Below are positions 194 through 13,301 of a stretch of 64,000 nt of DNA, piece by piece. The notes below the pieces were generated by a model that saw only the letters and a list, made by a program, of their open reading frames with translations, was not told the DNA's origin and searched no databases. Both the position numbers and the translations under genes were made by a program. Positions within the stretch are counted from its first letter, which is position 1, and each line of letters begins with the position of its first letter. The DNA is from Monocercomonoides exilis PA203 (Eukaryota; Protista; Preaxostyla). The stretch lies in the NCBI GenBank assembly GCA_001643675.2, contig LSRY02000013.1, positions 372,001-436,000 on the forward strand. Reading direction: 5' to 3'.

Positions 194-3127
194 TCACTTT
201 GAATTCAAGAAAGGATTGTTAGAAGGGTCAAACGTAAAGGCAGAGTTGAGGAAAGTCGAAGAAGAAGACAAAGCAAAAGGAGAAGCAGCATTTTGAGAGG
301 AGTCAAAAGGATTAGCAGAACTTTGCAGGAAAGGCGAGGGTTCGAATGGAGGGGAAGATGAAAGAAATGGATTGGGAGAAGCAGTAGCAGTAGGAGAAGA
401 AGAAGAAGAAGAAGAAGATGATGATGATGTGAACTGTGCAAATGGATTGGACGATGGATCAACAGCTGGCTGGGCAGATGAAGAAAAGGGAGATGCCATT
501 GGAGAAGATGATGTGGAAGAAGATGAATGTTCTGAAGAGCGATTGTCTGAAAAGGCATTTTGCGTTGAGTTTATGTTTTGCCCAGAAAAAGATGGATTTT
601 GAATACTCATCTGATTTGATCCAACAAGATGAGTGTTGGCTGATTCATTAATCTTTTCAGCTTCACTGTGTTCTGATTTATCTTCCTCTTCCTCTTCCTC
701 TTCCTCCATTTCACTTTCATCATCCTCTTCTTCTTCGCCTTCCTCTTCCCCTTCTTCCTCTCCTTCTTCCTCTCCTTCTTCCTCTCCTTCTTCCTCTCCT
801 TCTTCCTCTCCTTCTTCCTCTCCTTCTTCCTCTCCTTCTTCTCCTTCCTCTCCCTCTTCTTCAAATTCTTCTTCTCCTCCTTCTTCTCCTTCTTCTCCTT
901 CTTCTCCACTATCTGATTCAATCTCTTCAATCTGCCTTTTCGCAAATCCTCCAAATTTCCCTCTCAAATCATCTCCACTTTCATCCCTTTCATCCCTTTC
1001 GTCGCTTTCGTCATCGCTGTCAATCACAACAACCTCATTCCCGTGCTCCCTTCTCTGATTATTACTGCTCCTTCTTTCTGCCTCTTCATTTCCTCCTTCG
1101 CTTTCATCTGAATTGTCCTCCTCGCTTTCTGAGTTCCATTCCATCGCATTCATAAATCCATCTTCTGATTCACTAAACTCCTCTGATTCTCCTTCTTCTT
1201 CGCCTTCTTCGCCTTCTTCTTCACTTTCATCAGTTTCCTTTTCATTTCTTCTTTTGCTTTCTTTTCCCTCATACATCTCATAGTTCTGCTTCATCTTCTC
1301 ATAAAATTCCCTTTCTTGTTCTTCTCTTCTTTCTCTCTCTATTTTCCTCCTCTCTGAATCAAGCTGGCTTTCTTTCTCTTTCTCTTTCTCTTTCTCCATT
1401 TCATTCAGCTTTATATGTCCTTCAAGAGAATGAACATAACGAAGATGTTCCGATTGTAAAAAAGAAGAAGAAGAAGATGATGATGATGATGATGGAGTAA
1501 AAGATGAAGTGGTAGAAAACTGTGTTGAAGAAGAGTTTGAAGAAACAACATGATTTTGTGTTGATGGTGTGTTGTCATTGAAGTTATTGCTGTAATCAGA
1601 GGCAAACGAGGCAAAAGGATTATTTTCGTGAGATGAATGAAAAGTGCCGGTAGAAGAAGGTGCAGCATTTAAGAATGGATTTGATGAAGTCTCGTTTCTA
1701 TCGTTCTTGTTGAATAATTCATTGCCTTCATTCGCACTTGATAGATTGCTTGCAAACGATGCTCCAGATATTCTGTTGAGAAACGGATTTTCTGTTGACG
1801 ATTGCAACGCTTCTGTACTTGTTCGGCTGTTGCTTTGGGTAATTTCTGTCAAAAATGGATTTTGTTTATTTGAAGAAAAAGTATCTTCATTTTGTCTGGA
1901 TGGAGAAGATGATGCGTCCTCTTCTTCTACTTCTCTTTCTCTTTCTCTTTCAGAAGGACTTGAATCAAACATACTTCTTTGAGCAAAGTTTTCTTCTTTC
2001 GCTTCTTTCATAGCGCCTTCATTGTCTGTTCCATCTCTGCTTTCAGAGCATCCAGCCCTTCTGATCCTTTTTTGCATGAGCCTTCTTCGTTTAAGATGAT
2101 GATTAGGATGGGTTCGACTGGTTTGTGAGTTGCTCGATTCATTCTCTTCAATCGCTGTCCTTCCTCTTTTCAGTGGCTGCGTTCTCAAAAGAAGAGCAGC
2201 ATCGTTTGAAAAAGTTGTTTGATAATCTTCTTCTTTTCCTTCTTCTGACTCAGAATTCGATTCAGATGAAGAAAATAAAAGGCTAACATCAATCGAATCA
2301 TCATCTTCATCCTCCATTTCATTATTTTCTTTTCCTATCAGATTTTCATATTCACTGTCTCTTTCTTGTTCTTTTCCTCTTTTGTGCTTTCTTTTCTTTT
2401 TATGTTCAATCACTTTTGTCAAAAGCTTAAGTTTTGTTCGTTGCACAGCAATTTTTACTTTTGCATCTTCCAATTCTTTTCGAAGCATATTTTCTCGTTC
2501 TTCGGTTTGATGTATCAATTCTTGTTTCTCTTTTTCCAAAGAAAGGTGTTTTGCCCTTTCCTCATCAACTTCTTTTCTTGTATCATCGAGTTTTTTCATA
2601 ATTTCTGAAATAGCTTGTTCTTCTTTAATCAAACGTAAAGGTTCAGAAGGAGTTGAAGAAGTGATGCAAGGACGTCGATCTGCAATTGCTGAAGCGTGAT
2701 CAGAAGCTAAAAGAATCTTTATGATTGATTTGTTTGGCACGTATCTACTTGCCCCTTTATCAACAATCTTATTCAAACAGCTTGTTAAATGCAGAGCACT
2801 TTTATCTAAAAGTTGAGTCTTTGAAGCTATTGGTAAATGCTTTGCTTTTTGGCAACTATCTGTACCATTCAGCTTTGATAGATCGCTAGACGATGTTTCA
2901 TCACGTTTTTCTTGAAGATAATTGATTTTAAGTTGGGTTTGTTTATTATCTTTTTCTATTTTCTTTGTAAATGTTAAAAATTTGGAATTTGAAAGATGAT
3001 TAAAAGAATTTTCCTGGGTGTAAACGGCATTGTGTTTATTATACGCAATCAAATGTGGACAAAATATTTTAGCCACATCTTCATTTATTAACAAATCTGA
3101 AAAATTTGTTATTAACTTTCCATCCAT
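194..3127 (-). CDS. Low-complexity acidic/Ser-rich protein with coiled coil and 8 NPF motifs; function unknown
   Basis: 977-aa uninterrupted ORF with a coiled-coil segment, basic NLS-like runs, EEEG repeats and NPF motifs in two clusters. The true start codon is uncertain. Confidence 0.7.
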   Translation of the reverse strand: MDGKLITNFSDLLINEDVAKIFCPHLIAYNKHNAVYTQENSFNHLSNSKFLTFTKKIEKDNKQTQLKINYLQEKRDETSSSDLSKLNGTDSCQKAKHLPIASKTQLLDKSALHLTSCLNKIVDKGASRYVPNKSIIKILLASDHASAIADRRPCITSSTPSEPLRLIKEEQAISEIMKKLDDTRKEVDEERAKHLSLEKEKQELIHQTEERENMLRKELEDAKVKIAVQRTKLKLLTKVIEHKKKRKHKRGKEQERDSEYENLIGKENNEMEDEDDDSIDVSLLFSSSESNSESEEGKEEDYQTTFSNDAALLLRTQPLKRGRTAIEENESSNSQTSRTHPNHHLKRRRLMQKRIRRAGCSESRDGTDNEGAMKEAKEENFAQRSMFDSSPSEREREREVEEEDASSSPSRQNEDTFSSNKQNPFLTEITQSNSRTSTEALQSSTENPFLNRISGASFASNLSSANEGNELFNKNDRNETSSNPFLNAAPSSTGTFHSSHENNPFASFASDYSNNFNDNTPSTQNHVVSSNSSSTQFSTTSSFTPSSSSSSSSSSFLQSEHLRYVHSLEGHIKLNEMEKEKEKEKESQLDSERRKIERERREEQEREFYEKMKQNYEMYEGKESKRRNEKETDESEEEGEEGEEEGESEEFSESEDGFMNAMEWNSESEEDNSDESEGGNEEAERRSSNNQRREHGNEVVVIDSDDESDERDERDESGDDLRGKFGGFAKRQIEEIESDSGEEGEEGEEGGEEEFEEEGEEGEEGEEEGEEEGEEEGEEEGEEEGEEEGEEEGEEEGEEEEDDESEMEEEEEEEEDKSEHSEAEKINESANTHLVGSNQMSIQNPSFSGQNINSTQNAFSDNRSSEHSSSSTSSSPMASPFSSSAQPAVDPSSNPFAQFTSSSSSSSSSSSPTATASPNPFLSSSPPFEPSPFLQSSANPFDSSQNAASPFALSSSSTFLNSAFTFDPSNNPFLNSK
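752..850. repeat. Coding 12-bp tandem repeat (tcttcctctcct)n encoding EEEG on the minus strand
   Basis: About 8 near-perfect units are directly visible. Confidence 0.9.
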
Positions 3128-4528: not shown

Positions 4529-5039
4529 AAATAATCCTTATTTCGCTTCTTCACTTATCTTTGTATCATTCATCGTTTTTATTGCGGTTGATGTTGTTTT
4601 ACTTTCGATTCCTTCTCTCTCCAATTTATATCACACCAGGTTTCCTTCATTTCAGAATTTTCTTCTCTTCTTATCCGAGAGTATTATAATTTTCTTTCCA
4701 CTCATAACATCAAAATGTTGTGACTTTAAAATAAAGAAAAGCAAGAAAAAACTTAAAATGCTTTTTCTTTTTGTTGAAAAAAGACATTGAAATGCTTTTC
4801 GTTATTCTTCTCAATTTAGTGAAACAACAAAAAAGAAATGAAAATGCAATGTTATTTTTATAAAAAAAAAGAGAGAAAGTGCAATAAAAAGTTATTATTT
4901 TGCAAAATTGCTTTGATGTTATTTGGATTGCAAATTCAAAAAAATTATATTTTCAAAACGGATTCAGTTTATTTGTTCATTCATTTTTTATGAACAGAAA
5001 AATTTAATGGCACTTACGATCTTTTGGTTGGTTTTAAAG

Positions 5040-8000
5040 ATGGGAAAAGCCGACAAAAAAGTCGATTTATCCGATGTGCAATTTTCTACCTTCGACAAAG
5101 CATTATTTGGAACTCTTTTTGCTATGTCAAAGGTATGATAAATGAGTATATTACATGTTTATAATAAAAATAATAATTTTTCATTTTTAGGGAGAAGGTG
5201 AGGATGAAGGAGAAACATGGTTCACATATGCTCCTTTAGTATTCGAAATACTTCAGTGCGTCGGGTTGCCAGTTCAAGAAATTAGTTGCTGGCCAATGGG
5301 ACCTACAAAAGATGTTATAATGACTGCATTTGATTTTATGGATTTCCAGTTTTTTGTTGAAACTCCTGTAATGTCATACATGCTATTTTCCGTGCTATTT
5401 ATTATGATTATGGGATCAATTGTTGTGTTCGGAGCTCTTATGATTGTGTTTAAGAATGGAGATTCACGTGTCCCACTTCCACTTGTACGTCTTCTCCGTG
5501 TTATCACAAATGCTTCAGTTACGTGGGGTTACCAACCAATGATTACAATTATATTTATGATTGTAGATTGTCATTGGGATTCTGGAGTCGGCATGTGTGA
5601 TGCATTTCCTGAAGTTAAATGTTGGGAAGGGGCTCAAGCTGTCTTCAATGGGCTTTCTTTGTTTACATTGGCAATATTTCTGCCGTTCACGCAATTCATC
5701 ATTTTGTTTTTATATGAATTTGATTGTAAACATAATGTACTGATGGCAGCTTTTTCTGGTCGTTATGAATTTGTGGAAATGCTCACAAAATGTATTTTGA
5801 CAGCACAATCACAGTGGATCTCTCGCTATTACGAGGTGCGAGTGATGTCATGTATTATTGGGTTCACTTTCCTGATGTTCTACATCATGTGGATGCAGCC
5901 GTATTATTCGCTGCACACGAATGTATTTGCATCAGGCCAATATGCGTGGTCTGTCACCACATCTTTCTATGCGTGGATCTCCATCTTCGTCGAAGGCTCG
6001 GGGGCTCTGGTGATAACGCTGTTCTGGCTGACGTATCTGATATCGACAGTCTTCCTCACGTTCATCATCTGCCTGTATGCGCGGCAGATCTATCTCTCTC
6101 GCTGCGGGCTGACATACGACTTCCACATCCCTGTCAAGGCAGGCGTTCCGTTCAAGAAGAAAGTGCAGCCCTTCTTCAAAGAAGTCGTCCGGGTGAAGTA
6201 CAGCTACATCCGCGGGTTCGTCCACGAGTATCCAGAAACAGACAACGGAAGCACACAAAAGGAGCAGCAAGCAAACTTCGGAGACACTCGAAATGCCACT
6301 CCAGGCAATAACATCACTGCATCTCCGCCATCATCTTCCTCTTCCTCTTCCTCTTCTTCCTCTTCATCATCATCATCATCTTCTTCTTCTTCTTCTTCCT
6401 CCACTTCCTCTTCCTCTTCCGTGTCTTCTCCCCCTCAGTCTGGCCAGCCTCCCCTCTTCTACGGCATCCGCTCCTCTCCCGACGCCACCACCTTCCCCTC
6501 TCTCCCCACCACCCTCTCTGCCTCCACCACACCTGCCCCTTCCTCTTCCACCTCTCCTCTCCTCCGCCAGCCCCCGCCAGCCACCGACGGAGCCGGCACC
6601 AACAGCGGCTCGTCTTCCCCTCGCACTCGTTCTCTTCGCACTGTTCTGCAGCAGCGAATGCCTCAGCTCAGCCAAATCAGCGCAACTGTCTCGCCCACAC
6701 AGTCAGATGCGCCTTCTTCCCTTCTTCCCGATGAGACAGCGGATGGCAGAGAGGAAGTGCCGTATCTGCTGCCGAAGCTGAAGAAAGTGTCGTGGGTGGA
6801 CCAGTCGATAAGGTTTGTGTGGAATCCTGAAGTGCGAAAGAGGAAAGAGTATTTGGAGTATGCAGATGCCATCTACAGACAGGCGCTGATCAGATTCCCC
6901 AGGCACCCGGGGTTGAGAGTGCATTATGGCCTGTTTTTGTACAAGTACAAGAAAGACTGGGAAGGATGCATGAAGCAGATGAACATGGCACATCGTATTG
7001 GGGCCACGATTGACAACCGCTGGATGATCTTCTACATCTTCAAAGTTTACGAGCAAGAGCACTCAGGAGCAGATCTGAAGTCCGCGAATGTGCTGTCGCT
7101 GTTCCGGTACAAGAACCATCTGTCGCAGGCTGAGCAGAACCAGCGAGAGGCGAAGGAGAAGCTGAACACAGTGCTGTCGATGCTGGCGCAGGGTGACACA
7201 GACGTCGGCTCCATCTCTTCTCTACTCGACCAGCTGATCGACAACGAGAGGGAGGCAGACAGCCACTACAGGGCACTTCTTGAGAGTCATCCCTTTTCCA
7301 TTCCTGTGCTGAGAGGGTATGCGTCACTGCTGACAGATATCTTTCGGTTGGACTCAGAAGCAGAGCTGATGTATCAGAAGGCGAATGAGATTGAGGCAGA
7401 GATGAGGAGGATGAACCCAACAGAATACAAGTCTCAAGGGAGAGTGAAGGGGACAGTGGACAAAGTTGGAGCGAGAAAGGCACCGATCAGCGGAAGTGGC
7501 GATGAAGGCGGGGCATCAGGTGATGGGCGGAGCGGGTCAGGGTGGAAAGGGTCGACAGGAGATGTGTGGTTTCTTGTGTTGAAATATGGCTCGCCCTTTT
7601 CAGTGATCATCTTTCTGGGTCTGTTGTTGGGGCTGTTCTTCTCTGGCTTGTCAAATGTGAGTGACATGTCGCAGCATGTGGTGATTGTGGAGAGATTGTC
7701 GTCAGCTGCGCGGCTGAACAACGAGCTGGCGTATCTGGCAAAGCTCTACAACATCCACCGATTCAGCGAGGTGCCTCTGAATGGCTACTTCTACACGATG
7801 AGCGAGACAATCGAGAAGATGTCGGCGATGGCGCAGGAGCTGCACTCACAGACAGTCAACTCTCTCTTCCGGATGTCCTCACGCTATCTCAACTGGCAGG
7901 CAACAGAGCAGACCACATTCCTTGCCATTCACGAGAACAGGTTGCTAAGCTTCCAGCACGCACAGAGCCAGACGCTTGTCAATGCAGTCAATGGCTATGC

Positions 8001-10479
8001 AACAGACATGTATCTCTTAGCTGGTCTGTCTTCTGATCTGTCAGACGACTCAGCACTTGATATAACCATCCAGTCGCTGATGAATGGCCCAACGTCGCTC
8101 GACCAGAACTTCAAAGTGCAGCTGTGCAGCCTCATCAACACACTCGCCAAGCACAACATGACAACCATGTGGCTCGCCATAGCCATCGGCATCATCGGCG
8201 TCGTGCTCACGCTGGTTGTCGTGTTTGTCGTGTACATCCTCCTCACCCGCTTGAACACACAGAGGAACTCTGCCCTCTTCTTCTTCCTCGCCATCCGAAG
8301 AGACGTCCTCCACGACGTGCAGCAGCGCCTGGCGAACTCAGACGAGCTGGACAGAGGGCTGCTGGGAGGGTCAGGCAGCGATGCAGAGAAGAAGAAGAAG
8401 GCGCGGTGGAAGAAAGCGCTGAGGCTGGGCCATGTGATGAACGGCTTCCAGAACGGGATGTTGGGACGCCCGCCGCCACCTGCTGCGCTGATGGCTGAGC
8501 CGAACAGGATGATGATGAGGAGGCCGAGTTTTGCAGCGATGGAGATGATGCGAAGGAGCGGGGCTGCTCTGCCGCCGCTGATGGGAGGACAGCCACAGAT
8601 GATGGGAGGAGGAAGTGGAGGTGGAGGTGGAAGTGCAGATGCCAACCAGCACTCGCAGTCAACATTCACTCCTGTGCAGCACCTCGACCCGTCGATGGGG
8701 AGGCTGCCACCAGTTGCACCAGGACAGATGGGCAAACCAGGTGTGCCGTCGCTCTTCCCCTCTGGCTCGCCTTCTTCGTCGTCGTTGCTGTCTCCCACAG
8801 CTCAGGGTCCATCCTTAGCATCTTCCTCTTCCTCAACTTCAGTTTCTGCCTCTGCTGGTGCCTCAGCCACAGCCTCAGCAGCTAACTCCCACCCGCTCAT
8901 CCCTCCGCTCATCTCTTCCTCTGCGTCTGTCTCCAGCATCATCAACAACCGCACCTCTGCCTCCAAACTGCCCCTCAGCCCGCCGATGAGTGGAAGGCCC
9001 ATGTCTCCTGGCGGCACCACAGGAAGGAACACAGGAAGAGGCGCCGAGACATCGCGGTCGAGGGTGGAGAGAGAGAGAGAGCTGAAGCAGAGGATTAAGG
9101 AGAAGAAGCGACAGGAGCTGGAGAAGCCGCCAGAGTTTGCTGAGATGGTCATTCCACCCGTGACGAAGAAGCGGAGGAAGAGAGTGTTTCAGAATGCTGT
9201 GCCTGCTTCGATGATTGCGATGATCATGACGCTCTTTGCGCTGATGGTGATTGCCTTGCTTGTCGTTGTGGCGCTGTCGATCGTGGCGACTGTCAACATG
9301 CAGCCCTGGCTCGCCCGTGTAGGCATCGCTGGCCTGCGCTCCTCGTCTGCCCAGCTTCTTCATCTGCTTGCTCTCCTTGTGATTTCTCCAAACTCCAACG
9401 GCATTATGAACTACTCAGCCAACCTGCGCTCTTCACCTGGGTGGAAAGGGCTGGAGCACCTACAGCCGCAGAAAGAGGATGTGCTGGCTGTTTATCGCAG
9501 CTTCAGCACAGACTTCGACCATCTGCACGATTTGTGCCGGTTTGGGGAGATGGGCGAGTCAGGTGACAGTGTCATCGACGATGTGGATGTGTATGACACG
9601 TTGGATGTCTCGTCTATCCGTCCTATCCTGTATGACGAGAGCACCTGCTTCATGATCGACAAAGGTGTCTGCTCAGCCAGGCCCAACCGCATCCCCACCA
9701 CAAACATGGGCAACGGGGTGCCTGTGAATGGGATTGAGGCACTTCTGCAGCAGCTGTTCCGCTCGTCTGACCAGCTGCGTCTGTTTGACCCAGCCATTGC
9801 AGACATTTCCACACTGAATGCAGACTCCACCTCGCTCATCTACATCAACACTGCGCTGTCGTATGACCTCTCTGATGGGCTGTTTACAATCACAACTGAA
9901 CTGGCGAGGGCAGCGCAGGCGACGTTTGAGACACAGAAGGTGTTTCTGTATGTGGGATTTGCAGTTGACATGGTGCTGATTGTGGGGGTGTTCTTCTACA
10001 TCTTCTTCCCCGTGCAGTCACAGCTGAACCACGTGGCATTCAAGACAGGGAGAATTCGAGAGCTCTTTCCGATTGAGGAGACGATGGCGATTCGGTGGAA
10101 CAAGGCATTCAATTTAGGGGAGCAGAAGCTGGATGGGAATCACCGGCTTTTACTTGACACAGCAGCAAGTATGGTGGACATACTGATCAAAGGAGAGGAA
10201 AAACTGTTTCCGAACAGTTATGCACAGATGAAGAGTGTGTTGGATGTGCATCTGAAACAAGAGAGCAAGTTTATCACGGGGACGCACCATCCGCACGCGA
10301 AGAAGCACATCCAAAAGATCAAAGAGTTCAACAAGGCGTTTGATGACTTGGTTACGAAGTATGAAGACGGGCTGGATGTGACAGAAGCGATGTTCCATCT
10401 GTTCAACTACTTCATCGACCACCACATCATCGAAGACAACAAGCACATACTCGACTTCACAAAGGACAAACACACTTGA
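5040..10479 (+). CDS. Large multipass membrane protein, TmcB/TmcC-like (N-terminal multi-TM block, TPR-like domain, two TM-loop-TM modules) with C-terminal hemerythrin-like domain
   Basis: Exon 1 5040-5132, intron 5133-5190, exon 2 5191-10479 in frame. Hydrophobic segments at ~5370-6090, 7560-7650, 8170-8250, 9200-9300 and 9940-10010. TPR-like YADAIYRQALIRFP and EADSHYRALLESHP..LRGYASLL. C-terminus has W..F.LG..LD..H, HLKQE, KKH and HHIIED. Confidence 0.8.
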
Positions 10480-11112
10480 AGTGGGGACGGGCAATGAGGT
10501 TGTTCATTTCTTTCTATTTGGTCTTTATGAATACATTCACACTCCTCTAAAAAAAAATCATCTCTTTTTTTTCACTTTCATTTATTTATTTATTTTCTTG
10601 TTATAATCATTTCATGTTTATTGTCATTTCAAAATTTCTTAATTCCTTGGTTTCAAAGAAAAAAGTTCTTCATCAACAAAAAAAATATGATTTATTTGGA
10701 AGTATTTTTTATTGCACTTTTACTCTTTTTCATATTCCTTTAAAAAATATTTTTTCGTTTTATGTTTTTATCAATAAAAAAATGCAATTTTAAAAAGCAT
10801 TTTAATTTTTTCTTTCTTTTTCCTTTTTGACATAACATTAAGATAACCATTTATATTTATATTTAAACAAAAGAATTATAACAAACTATTTTTCTGGATT
10901 GAAAATTTTCAATGAAATATATTTTTTAAGAAAACTATAAAATGAGTTCTTCTCAGTAAAAATTGCATATCTTTGCTGCGGTTTTTGAGTGATTCGAAAG
11001 AATTTGAAATAAATTCCCTTAAGCAGACTTTAATAACAAAAAATGTTCAGGAAAATCATTGTTTTAAATAAAGGGTACATTTTCATTTAATAATCGCTGC
11101 TTATCTTGTCCA

Positions 11113-13301
11113 ATGGCAATGCTTATTGGTCCAGTGCCAACAACACCTGCTGGCCCTGTTCATCCGCCTCCAATGCTAAGGTCTTATTCCATTCGTACCA
11201 TGCCTCGAGTCGGGTCAACGCAATCTTTTAATCAAGATCCTGCTACTCCAACGCAAACTGACTTTGCGCATACAGCTAAAGATTTTGAATATATAAGCAG
11301 TAAATTTAAAGGAAAAGATCTTCAAGCAGAATATGAGAAACGAATGGCTGCGAAAATGGAAACTCTTCGTCATTTGTTTAGAATTGGTACTGGGCCAAGT
11401 AGTAGCCATACTATGGGTCCGAGACGAGCATGCGGCCGCTTTAATAAACGATTTCCGGATACGCATAAAGTCAAAGTTACCCTTTATGGTTCTTTGGCCG
11501 CAACAGGCCGAGGGCATTTAACAGATGTTGCTATCATGGAAGGATTAAAAGGAAAAGAAGTTACTCTTTGTTGGGAGCCAGAAAAAGATCTTGAACATCA
11601 CAACGGCTTAACTTTCGAAGCATTGGACGGACCACGAGCCGGAGAAAAATATACATGCTATTCTATCGGAGGTGGAGCACTTCTTGATGACTCAACAAAA
11701 GGAGGACCTCCAGGAACAGCAATGAACAGCGTTCACGAGATATATCCATACTCCAATTTCACTATGATATTGCATTGGGTTGAAGAAACTGGAAAGCCTC
11801 TTTGGCAGTATGTCGAAGAATACGAGCCTCCTACAATTTGGGATTATTTGAAGAAAGTTTGGTTGACAATGAAAGATGCGATAAATCGTGGCTTAAACAG
11901 CTCGACTGCTGTTCTTCCTGGACCCTTGAACACTCCACAGCGCGCACGGTCGTTGTATCTGAAGTCTCGCAGGTTGAGTGAGCAGTACAGGCGGAACACG
12001 CTTGTGATGGCGTATGCAATGGCAGTCAGTGAAGAAAATGCTTCGGGTGGAGTTGTTGTCACTGCGCCGACCTGTGGGTCTTGTGGAGTGATTCCCGCAT
12101 GCTTGTATTACATGCAGGTAAAGGAAGGATTTGACGATGCTGAGATAATCAGGGCGCTGGCTGTTGCTGGGCTTCTTGGTAATCTCATCAAAGCCAATGG
12201 TTCCATCTCTGGAGCTGAGTGTGGATGTCAAGCAGAGGTTTGCTTTCAAAGTAATTAATTGCAATTGCATATTTTTTTTTAACTTTATGCTTTCTTTTCC
12301 TTCTTCTCTATTCTTATTTTTACTAAATGCAACTATTTAATTTCAGATTGGATCTGCATCTTCGATGGCTGCTGGTGCTGTGACCATGCTGATGGGAGGG
12401 TCACCCTACCAAGTTGGCCATGCAGCATCAATTGCAATGGAGCATTGCTTGGGACTCACATGCGACCCTTGCGAAGGACTGGTACAGATTCCGTGCATTG
12501 AGAGGAATGGCTTCTATGCCACTCAGGCGTTTGTTGCAGCAGAGATTGCTATTTTGGAAGATGGAAGATGTCCCATCAGCTTTGACGAGGTGTGTGCTAA
12601 TGGATGAGAGTGAAATAATGAAAGTTATCTTTCTTGAAGTAATTCTTGAAATGAGATTTTTTTTTTTTTCTTATTGAAATATTTTTGCGTTAATTGCTTC
12701 ATTTTGAATCATTTTCTTTTTTTAATGTTCTGTTGCAAAATTTCATTCGATAATACAACAATATTCATTCTTGTTTGAACAGGTCATATTTACAATGTAT
12801 CTGACAGGGAAAGCGTTGCGCGAAGAATATCGAGAAACAAGCAAAGGTGGACTTGCATTCACGTTTCAGCTTGACGAGCAAGAAGACGAAGTGAAGCAAA
12901 AGAAAGCGGTGAGGCAAGAAGTGCAGCGATCTTTAGACGAAAGAGAGCTAATTGCAACCAAACGGAGGCAGATTATGGAGAAAGCGATGGAAAGAAAAGC
13001 CAAGAAAAAGATGCAGCGGCACAAGCAGTCGGAGATGTCGTGTGAAAGCAATCTGTCGAAGTTGTCGTCTTTGTCCACCGATGATGATGACGACGATGAC
13101 GACGATTATGCTGACGAGGATGACTACTTCATTGGACCTGACAAGGGCCCAATGCCATCCACCATCATTGCTCCTTCTTCATCGTCGTCTGACGTATCTG
13201 CCCCTCTTCGCCTAACAACCACCCCACCTCAACATTACAACGCTTCCAGCTTCGACAATTATTTCATTCCACCTGCTTCTATTCCACCCACAGCCTACTA
13301 A
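11113..13301 (+). CDS. sdaA: Iron-sulfur-dependent L-serine dehydratase, single-chain bacterial type
   Basis: Exons 11113-12237, 12347-12589, 12783-13301. Motifs FRIGTGPSSSHTMGP, LYGSLAATGRGH, YSIGGG, EENASGG.VVTAPTCGSCG, SISGAECGCQAEIG, EHCLGLTCDP..GLVQIPCIERN and YRETSKGGLA. Confidence 0.95.

Follow-up and report, generated by a model that had tools for sequence, protein, structure and literature searches.

What does a bacterial-type hemerythrin domain do at the end of a large membrane protein in an anaerobic eukaryote? This question is raised by a gene at positions 5040-10479 of the forward strand in a stretch of 64,000 nucleotides (the window) from Monocercomonoides exilis PA203, corresponding to positions 372,001 to 436,000 of contig LSRY02000013.1. 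M. exilis is a model eukaryote without mitochondria, and we know of no O2-sensing pathway described for it. The gene encodes a protein of 1,793 amino acids in which a multipass scaffold of the TmcB type is followed by a terminal domain predicted to fold as a bacteriohemerythrin, and it belongs to a family of at least 56 genes in the same genome. Identity, architecture and family are, in our judgement, established with high confidence. The best overall explanation, namely a TmcB-hemerythrin membrane protein whose regulatory tail holds one metal ion or a non-canonical site, is given an even chance, an estimate that blends this high confidence in identity, architecture and family with a more conjectural mechanism.

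The terminal domain, its transcript and its scaffold

The hemerythrin-fold domain (10093..10452) was recognized by the TIGR02481 profile, by a hidden Markov model (HMM) built here from bacterial sequences, by the fold predicted with AlphaFold2 and by structural comparison. The TIGR02481 match has an E value of 4.5e-13 and 49.4 bits, against a cut-off of 51.75, and spans profile positions 1-123 of 126; the next models are the bacteriohemerythrins NF033749 and NF002007, while the metazoan-type model TIGR00058 is much weaker. In Pfam, only DUF2935 surfaced for the tail (E 0.02-0.9). A phmmer search of 1.84 billion representatives returned a few oxymonad proteins and then about 90 bacterial hemerythrins at E <= 1e-3, which are approximately 130 amino acids long and 20-30% identical to the tail. 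The HMM built from 69 of the bacterial matches, themselves selected with this query, scores the domain at 77.6 bits. Against the sequences of the PDB, the tail retrieved by phmmer only Old Yellow Enzyme (E >= 0.08), which was set aside as a chance match.

With an alignment of 50 sequences, AlphaFold2 gave a four-helix model with a mean pLDDT (predicted local distance difference test) of 94, which superseded a poor single-sequence model of 9940-10476 (pLDDT 55). The best Foldseek matches of this model are the hemerythrin domain of DcrH and the bacteriohemerythrin of Methylococcus (TM-score 0.78-0.80), and its VIA-align superposition on 3waq, the DcrH hemerythrin domain, has a Z of 17.8 and a root-mean-square deviation of 2.0 Å over 131 of 134 residues. 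Hemerythrins fill the first 14 places of the structural ranking, with Z between 15 and 17.8, and no unrelated bundle exceeds 13.8; in a shape search of the ESM Atlas a bacteriohemerythrin was again the best match (TM-score 0.85). The last 125 residues or so are thus predicted, on the basis of this model, to adopt the bacteriohemerythrin four-helix fold with its N-terminal extension, and the terminal hemerythrin domain proposed in the initial annotation is borne out by both the profile match and the predicted fold.

The interval 5040-10479 is an expressed two-exon gene. Its start was placed at the ATG at 5040 by a three-frame reading of the 5' end together with the DNA. Exon 1 (5040..5132, forward strand) contributes 31 codons, as read from the translation, the DNA and the RNA contigs; it is followed by a GT..AG intron of 58 nt (5133..5190), seen in the DNA and skipped in the contigs of four RNA runs, and by exon 2 (5191..10479), an open frame of 1762 codons closed by a stop at 10477-10479. 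The RNA evidence consists of contigs from these four runs, all from one study, and such contigs speak to the structure of the transcript and not to its expression level or exact ends. They begin at 5022-5055, join 5132 to 5191 in the four runs and show zero differences from the genome. In each run one contig of about 4.3 kb covers 6429-10739, including the tetratricopeptide repeat (TPR) domain, the four late transmembrane (TM) helices, the hemerythrin domain and approximately 260 nt of 3' untranslated region. Because a single contig spans all of these parts, the hemerythrin domain is transcribed together with the TPR and TM modules, a point on which the initial annotation had made its proposal depend, and a fusion created artificially by the gene model is ruled out. 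The sole hole in RNA coverage (6323-6428) is a poly-Ser repeat that was skipped by the read-placement method. The 3' untranslated region (10480..10739) is drawn to the limit of the RNA contigs, which end at 10736-10739 in three runs, although contig ends of RNA assemblies are no proof of a poly(A) site. The G+C content is 50-59% in the coding DNA versus about 30% in the flanks.

Upstream of the tail, the protein has the features of a TmcB-type multipass membrane protein, as judged from its sequence. For the scaffold, residues are numbered from window position 5194 (the full-protein number is obtained by adding 32), the two exons were searched separately with profiles and for fold, and TM segments were taken from Kyte-Doolittle hydropathy and flanking charges. 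An N-terminal block with about six hydrophobic segments (5218..6084, residues 9-297) is followed by a low-complexity stretch rich in Ser, Pro and Thr (6180..6870), which contains the poly-Ser run, and by a TPR_TmcB domain (PF25474) at 7060..7410 (residues 623-739). The Pfam match of the latter is clear (E 2.8e-14, 53.5 bits against a cut-off of 27, profile positions 8-124 of 125), and it was recovered at the same place in the genome-wide search. The first TM-loop-TM module (7597..8238) consists of a helix at 7597-7659, a loop of 172 amino acids at 7660-8175 and a helix at 8176-8238, the helices corresponding to residues 802-822 and 995-1015. A low-complexity linker (8239..9225), rich in Lys and Arg at its end and presumably cytosolic, leads to the second module (9226..10014), with helices at 9226-9294 (residues 1345-1367) and 9940-10014 (residues 1583-1607) on either side of a loop of 215 amino acids (9295-9939). 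A basic juxtamembrane linker that is highly conserved in the subfamily (10015..10092) connects this module to the hemerythrin domain.

In total there are approximately ten hydrophobic segments, in agreement with the multipass character of the TmcB family, and the multi-TM block, the TPR-like domain and the two TM-loop-TM modules that had been proposed from the sequence are all present. No PAS, cyclase, HAMP, MCP or kinase domain was found at E <= 1 in a Pfam search of the whole of exon 2, so that the earlier statement that neither PAS nor cyclase was visible holds; nor did the N-terminal block or either loop match any Pfam family. Comparison of the two modules with one another gave no significant similarity. 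In the Atlas, the clusters nearest to the protein bear the label 'TmcB/TmcC TPR repeats', come from Preaxostyla and Parabasalia, and are given PF25474 as their only common family. Since an even number of helices separates the TPR domain from the tail, both should lie on the same side of the membrane. Basic flanks follow the helices at residues 995-1015 and 1583-1607 and precede the helix at 1345; that side would most simply be the cytosol, with the two large loops facing outward.

Ligand set and divergent subfamily

With the domain counted from 10075, alignments made by MAFFT and with the bacterial HMM gave an identical result: five of the seven canonical di-iron ligands are kept in this copy. 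The equivalents of H25 (H23, codon 10141), H54 (H59, codon 10249), E58 (E63, codon 10261), H73 (H78, codon 10306) and H101 (H117, codon 10423) are retained, while that of H77 is substituted by I82 (codon 10318) and that of D106 by N122 (codon 10438), with D121 (codon 10435) one position earlier. The motif from which the domain had originally been recognized is therefore in register for W..F.LG...D..H, HxxxE and one helix-3 His, and off by one residue for HxxxxD (H116..D121). There is no obvious substitute for the H77 equivalent. The i+4 spacing (HxxxE/D) is that of HHE-type hemerythrin-like domains (PF01814), and since D121 stands at i+4 of H117, a carboxylate ligand may persist. Since ligands are missing in this copy, and more of them in its closest relatives, a canonical di-iron site that binds O2 is less probable than in paralogues with all seven ligands, and reversible O2 binding at such a centre appears unlikely in this copy.

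The nearest public relatives are found in Blattamonas nauphoetae and Streblomastix strix. Within the genome, the closest paralogue lies on C30, with its end at about 944116; it shares exon 1 and the position of the intron with this gene, and its exon 2 runs to 2,652 codons. Identity between the two is 91% in the N-terminal block, 79% in the TPR domain, 83% in the juxtamembrane linker and 57% in the hemerythrin domain, and 34-39% in the TM-loop-TM modules. The Blattamonas protein P0101 (1,587 amino acids) has the same architecture from end to end, with 65% identity in the N-terminal block, and P0002 (929 amino acids) matches the C-terminal half; the juxtamembrane linker is 59-78% identical to those of the Blattamonas proteins. 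The hemerythrin tail of P0101, at residues 1458-1580, is unannotated publicly. At its start the public model of this protein shows a Tubulin-binding cofactor C domain (PF07986, residues 24-128), after which the protein is named; either the domain is genuine or two genes have been merged in the model.

The tails of this gene, C30, P0101 and P0002 form a clade with a Shimodaira-Hasegawa-like approximate likelihood ratio (SH-aLRT) support of 99, the only supported group in a domain tree of 83 rows by 136 columns. The deeper branches of this tree are unresolved, and it neither shows nor excludes that the oxymonad hemerythrin domains have one origin. All four have a hydrophobic residue in the H77 column and an Asn, preceded by an acidic residue, in the D106 column, and C30, P0002 and P0101 have also lost the H73 equivalent, which leaves them with four of the seven ligands. 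The positions affected in the subfamily are those of the helix-3 His of iron 1 and of the bridging Asp. The loss shared by the four tails should therefore be old, preceding the split between Blattamonas and Monocercomonoides. Invariant in the four tails are the His of helix 1, the H..E of helix 2 and, in helix 4, the His with its acidic residues; the linker and the N-terminal strand are conserved best. Conservation of the linker and of the first half of the domain across two genera argues for a retained function, and the hemerythrin domain of the subfamily appears, from these comparisons, to be still under constraint. Word-based protein searches, limited by their length window and word index and hence uninformative on the distribution outside oxymonads, returned no match for residues 1560-1761, two for residues 1-800 and one for residues 1-310, and the N-terminal block was matched only within its own subfamily.

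The genome-wide family

The gene is not alone in its genome. A six-frame search of 82,301,135 bases in 101 contigs with the TIGR02481 and PF25474 profiles found no fewer than 58 hemerythrin matches, of which 18 exceed the cut-off, as well as at least 69 TPR_TmcB matches. Of the 58, at least 56 are paired with a TPR_TmcB match that precedes them on their own strand by 2.7-7.9 kb; the two left unpaired closely resemble a C47 gene and stand in short or broken frames. All these counts are lower bounds. No free-standing hemerythrin gene was found in the six-frame TIGR02481 search, and every hemerythrin domain detected in the genome belongs to this TmcB-hemerythrin expansion of at least 56 genes. 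The hemerythrin-bearing scaffolds are 1,700-3,500 amino acids long and have variable loops predicted to face outward. Thirteen TPR_TmcB genes are without a hemerythrin match, at least three of which show sub-threshold hemerythrin remnants. According to the initial annotation, PAS or nucleotide-cyclase domains are usual on protist TmcB scaffolds; no support was found for this, and in this genome the hemerythrin tail is the norm. The class of TmcB-hemerythrin proteins is real and, as had been supposed, absent from the searchable literature, but this gene is far from its only member.

The two unpaired matches (C47:219026-219397 and C47:471049-471420, both on the reverse strand) are near-identical to the hemerythrin tail at C47:119103; they stand in frames of 208 amino acids, with an in-frame TAG, and of 522 amino acids, no TPR_TmcB domain was found upstream of either, and they are probably truncated duplicates or pseudogenes.

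The ligands were compared in 14 sampled domains. Eight paralogues keep all seven ligands, two keep six (H54 lost) and two lack both His ligands of iron 2, H25 and H54; five are kept in this gene and four in the C30 paralogue. Paralogues with the complete set, for example C50:68972, C35:289548 and C25:555004, score 72-86 bits on TIGR02481, above the cut-off. They share with this gene the position of the TPR_TmcB domain, 2.7-7.9 kb upstream of a terminal hemerythrin domain, and differ from it in score (49 bits here), in ligands (five of seven here) and in an extension that is missing here. The extension, of about 55 amino acids after the hemerythrin domain with a recurring 'PPS...E.F..S......K', is conserved in the paralogues with six or seven ligands, whereas the subfamily of this gene ends 8 residues past the domain match. 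Judged by their ligands, the paralogues with the full set would be better candidates for O2 sensors than this copy. In the tails of C6:1249686 and C8:402182, H25 is replaced by R and H54 by Q or Y with the other five ligands kept, so that the loss hits the O2-binding iron, the mirror image of the loss in this gene.

Readings of the tail and related systems

For the tail of this gene we tentatively prefer a reduced or altered metal site that would still report metal or redox state, although we place this reading somewhat below an even chance. The tail would most likely act as a cytosolic regulatory module of the membrane protein, in which the five conserved polar positions (His, His..Glu, His and the acidic residue at i+4) could hold one metal ion or form a non-canonical site. 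The metal, redox or folding state of the tail would then influence the scaffold or its partners, for which the hemerythrin tails of DcrH and FBXL5 serve as models. Several points weigh against it. The profile check suggested by the initial annotation came out divided, with TIGR02481 matching from end to end, yet 2.3 bits short of its curated cut-off, and PF01814 failing to match this copy at E <= 1 in Pfam. Since bacterial hemerythrins were part of the alignment given to AlphaFold2, the agreement in fold is no independent confirmation of the agreement in sequence. The topology is derived from hydropathy and the positive-inside rule only, a recognizable output domain is absent from the protein in the Pfam search, and ligands were compared in 14 of the 58 domains, a sample biased to the best scorers. 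Finally, a di-iron site might in principle be rebuilt with H74 (one turn ahead of H78), H116 and D121.

This last possibility leads to a canonical O2 sensor, with two irons, reversible O2 binding, H74 or H116 together with D121 as stand-ins and signalling like that of DcrH, which we consider unlikely. The five ligands in register speak for it, as do the His one turn before H78, the Asp at i+4 of H117 with its HHE-type spacing, the DcrH hemerythrin domain as best structural match and the need of an anaerobic organism to avoid O2 (PMC6759080). However, H74 is on the wrong side of H78 to replace the H77 equivalent, H78 itself is not conserved among the three closest relatives, and in these relatives both helix-3 His are gone and Asn stands in place of the Asp, so that no iron-1 site is conserved across the subfamily. 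The same stepwise loss of ligands within the subfamily would be expected if the bundle were metal-free, purely structural or used for protein docking, and sensed nothing. The docking bundles FAT and CCM3, which are the next-best structural matches (Z 12-13.5), and the loss of different ligands in other family members (L012-L015, L046), suggesting a relaxed constraint on the metal site, point in this direction too. Nevertheless, the remaining ligand positions are invariant in four members from two genera while their neighbours vary, which is the pattern expected of a retained metal or polar site, and a metal-free tail, which we rank next after the preferred reading, appears to us rather doubtful.

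Free hemerythrins are known to protect Fe-S enzymes in Campylobacter, and membrane-tethered tails might similarly buffer O2, iron or reactive species without taking part in signalling. The high copy number would suit such a role, as would the listing of an M. exilis hemerythrin among the oxygen-stress genes acquired from bacteria (PMC6759080), but a buffer would be costly when each copy comes attached to a receptor-like scaffold of 1,700-3,500 amino acids, and the full di-iron site is absent from this copy; protection or storage is therefore regarded as very improbable. At the level of the whole family, a more speculative proposal, to which we give little credence at present, is that the bacterial-type hemerythrin serves as a universal cytosolic module of the TmcB scaffolds in a large receptor system specific to the oxymonad lineage, split into functional ligand classes that read different signals. 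The classes would be tails with a full di-iron site (O2 or NO sensing), tails without the iron-2 His and tails without the iron-1 His (this gene), and the signals would be O2, iron or another metal, and redox state. If true, this mitochondrion-less cell would have a form of membrane signalling that is new for eukaryotes.

Among known systems, DcrH of Desulfovibrio vulgaris (PDB 2avk, 2awc, 3waq), a methyl-accepting chemoreceptor with a C-terminal hemerythrin domain, is among the closest. In both cases a membrane protein of an anaerobe has a TM-loop-TM sensor-like module and a C-terminal domain of the bacteriohemerythrin type, cytosolic in DcrH and probably so here. DcrH possesses the signalling domains HAMP and MCP as well as the complete set of seven ligands, whereas the M. 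exilis protein combines a eukaryotic TmcB scaffold, about ten TM segments and a TPR domain with two substituted ligands and no match to HAMP or MCP. In the eukaryotic iron sensors FBXL5 and plant BTS/HRZ, a hemerythrin-like domain with non-standard ligands (HxxxE spacing) is a stability switch dependent on iron and oxygen. These proteins share with the present tail a non-standard hemerythrin ligand set and provide a plausible working analogy for its H..x3..D arrangement, but they are soluble components of E3 ligases with an F-box or a RING, neither of which was found here, and the likeness is one of fold. With TmcB of Dictyostelium discoideum the protein shares a TPR_TmcB domain above the Pfam cut-off and the multipass character; Dictyostelium TmcB is reported, as cited in two papers, to act in cAMP signalling during macrocyst (sexual) development (PMC8516963, PMC12750705).

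The fusion of TmcB and hemerythrin, its scale and its ligand classes are undescribed in the searchable literature, while the TmcB family and hemerythrin tails as such are already known. Such tails occur on signalling proteins including DcrH, hemerythrin-diguanylate cyclases and FBXL5. In the searchable literature no paper has both 'hemerythrin' and 'tmcB', and 'hemerythrin' and 'oxymonad' occur together only in PMC6759080, in which Karnkowska et al. (2019) placed an M. exilis hemerythrin among the oxygen-stress genes of bacterial origin. As no free-standing hemerythrin was found in the genome, the hemerythrin of that paper is probably one of the TmcB tails. Public databases automatically label a Blattamonas relative 'Hemerythrin-like domain-containing protein'. 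The tmcB family has been described as present in Carpediemonas and absent from all other sampled metamonads (PMC8516963, section 10), a statement contradicted by the at least 69 PF25474 matches reported here; Atlas TmcB clusters are likewise found in Preaxostyla and Parabasalia. What this gene adds is the iron-1-deficient subfamily and its conservation in Blattamonas, that is, a part of the family that has moved off the canonical di-iron site and is yet conserved across genera. The family as a whole provides a concrete set of candidates for the perception of O2, iron or redox state in anaerobic protists, and a natural series of ligand variants with which to ask what the hemerythrin fold does once its di-iron site is dismantled.

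A few side observations were made in the course of the analysis. Among the proteins retrieved, P0040 (1305 amino acids, on a Logan contig of 48 kb) is bacterial by its domain set, which comprises HAMP, GAF, PAS and three tandem hemerythrin domains with all seven ligands. Upstream of the gene, the reverse strand carries an open reading frame of 977 amino acids (194-3127) with no Pfam family at E <= 0.1. About 630 nt downstream, a forward-strand open reading frame of 381 amino acids (11113-12258) matches the two chains of bacterial-type L-serine dehydratase (SDH_alpha, E 3.6e-33; SDH_beta, E 2.3e-27), and since the alpha match is confined to positions 23-154 of a profile of 260, this gene probably continues in a further exon.

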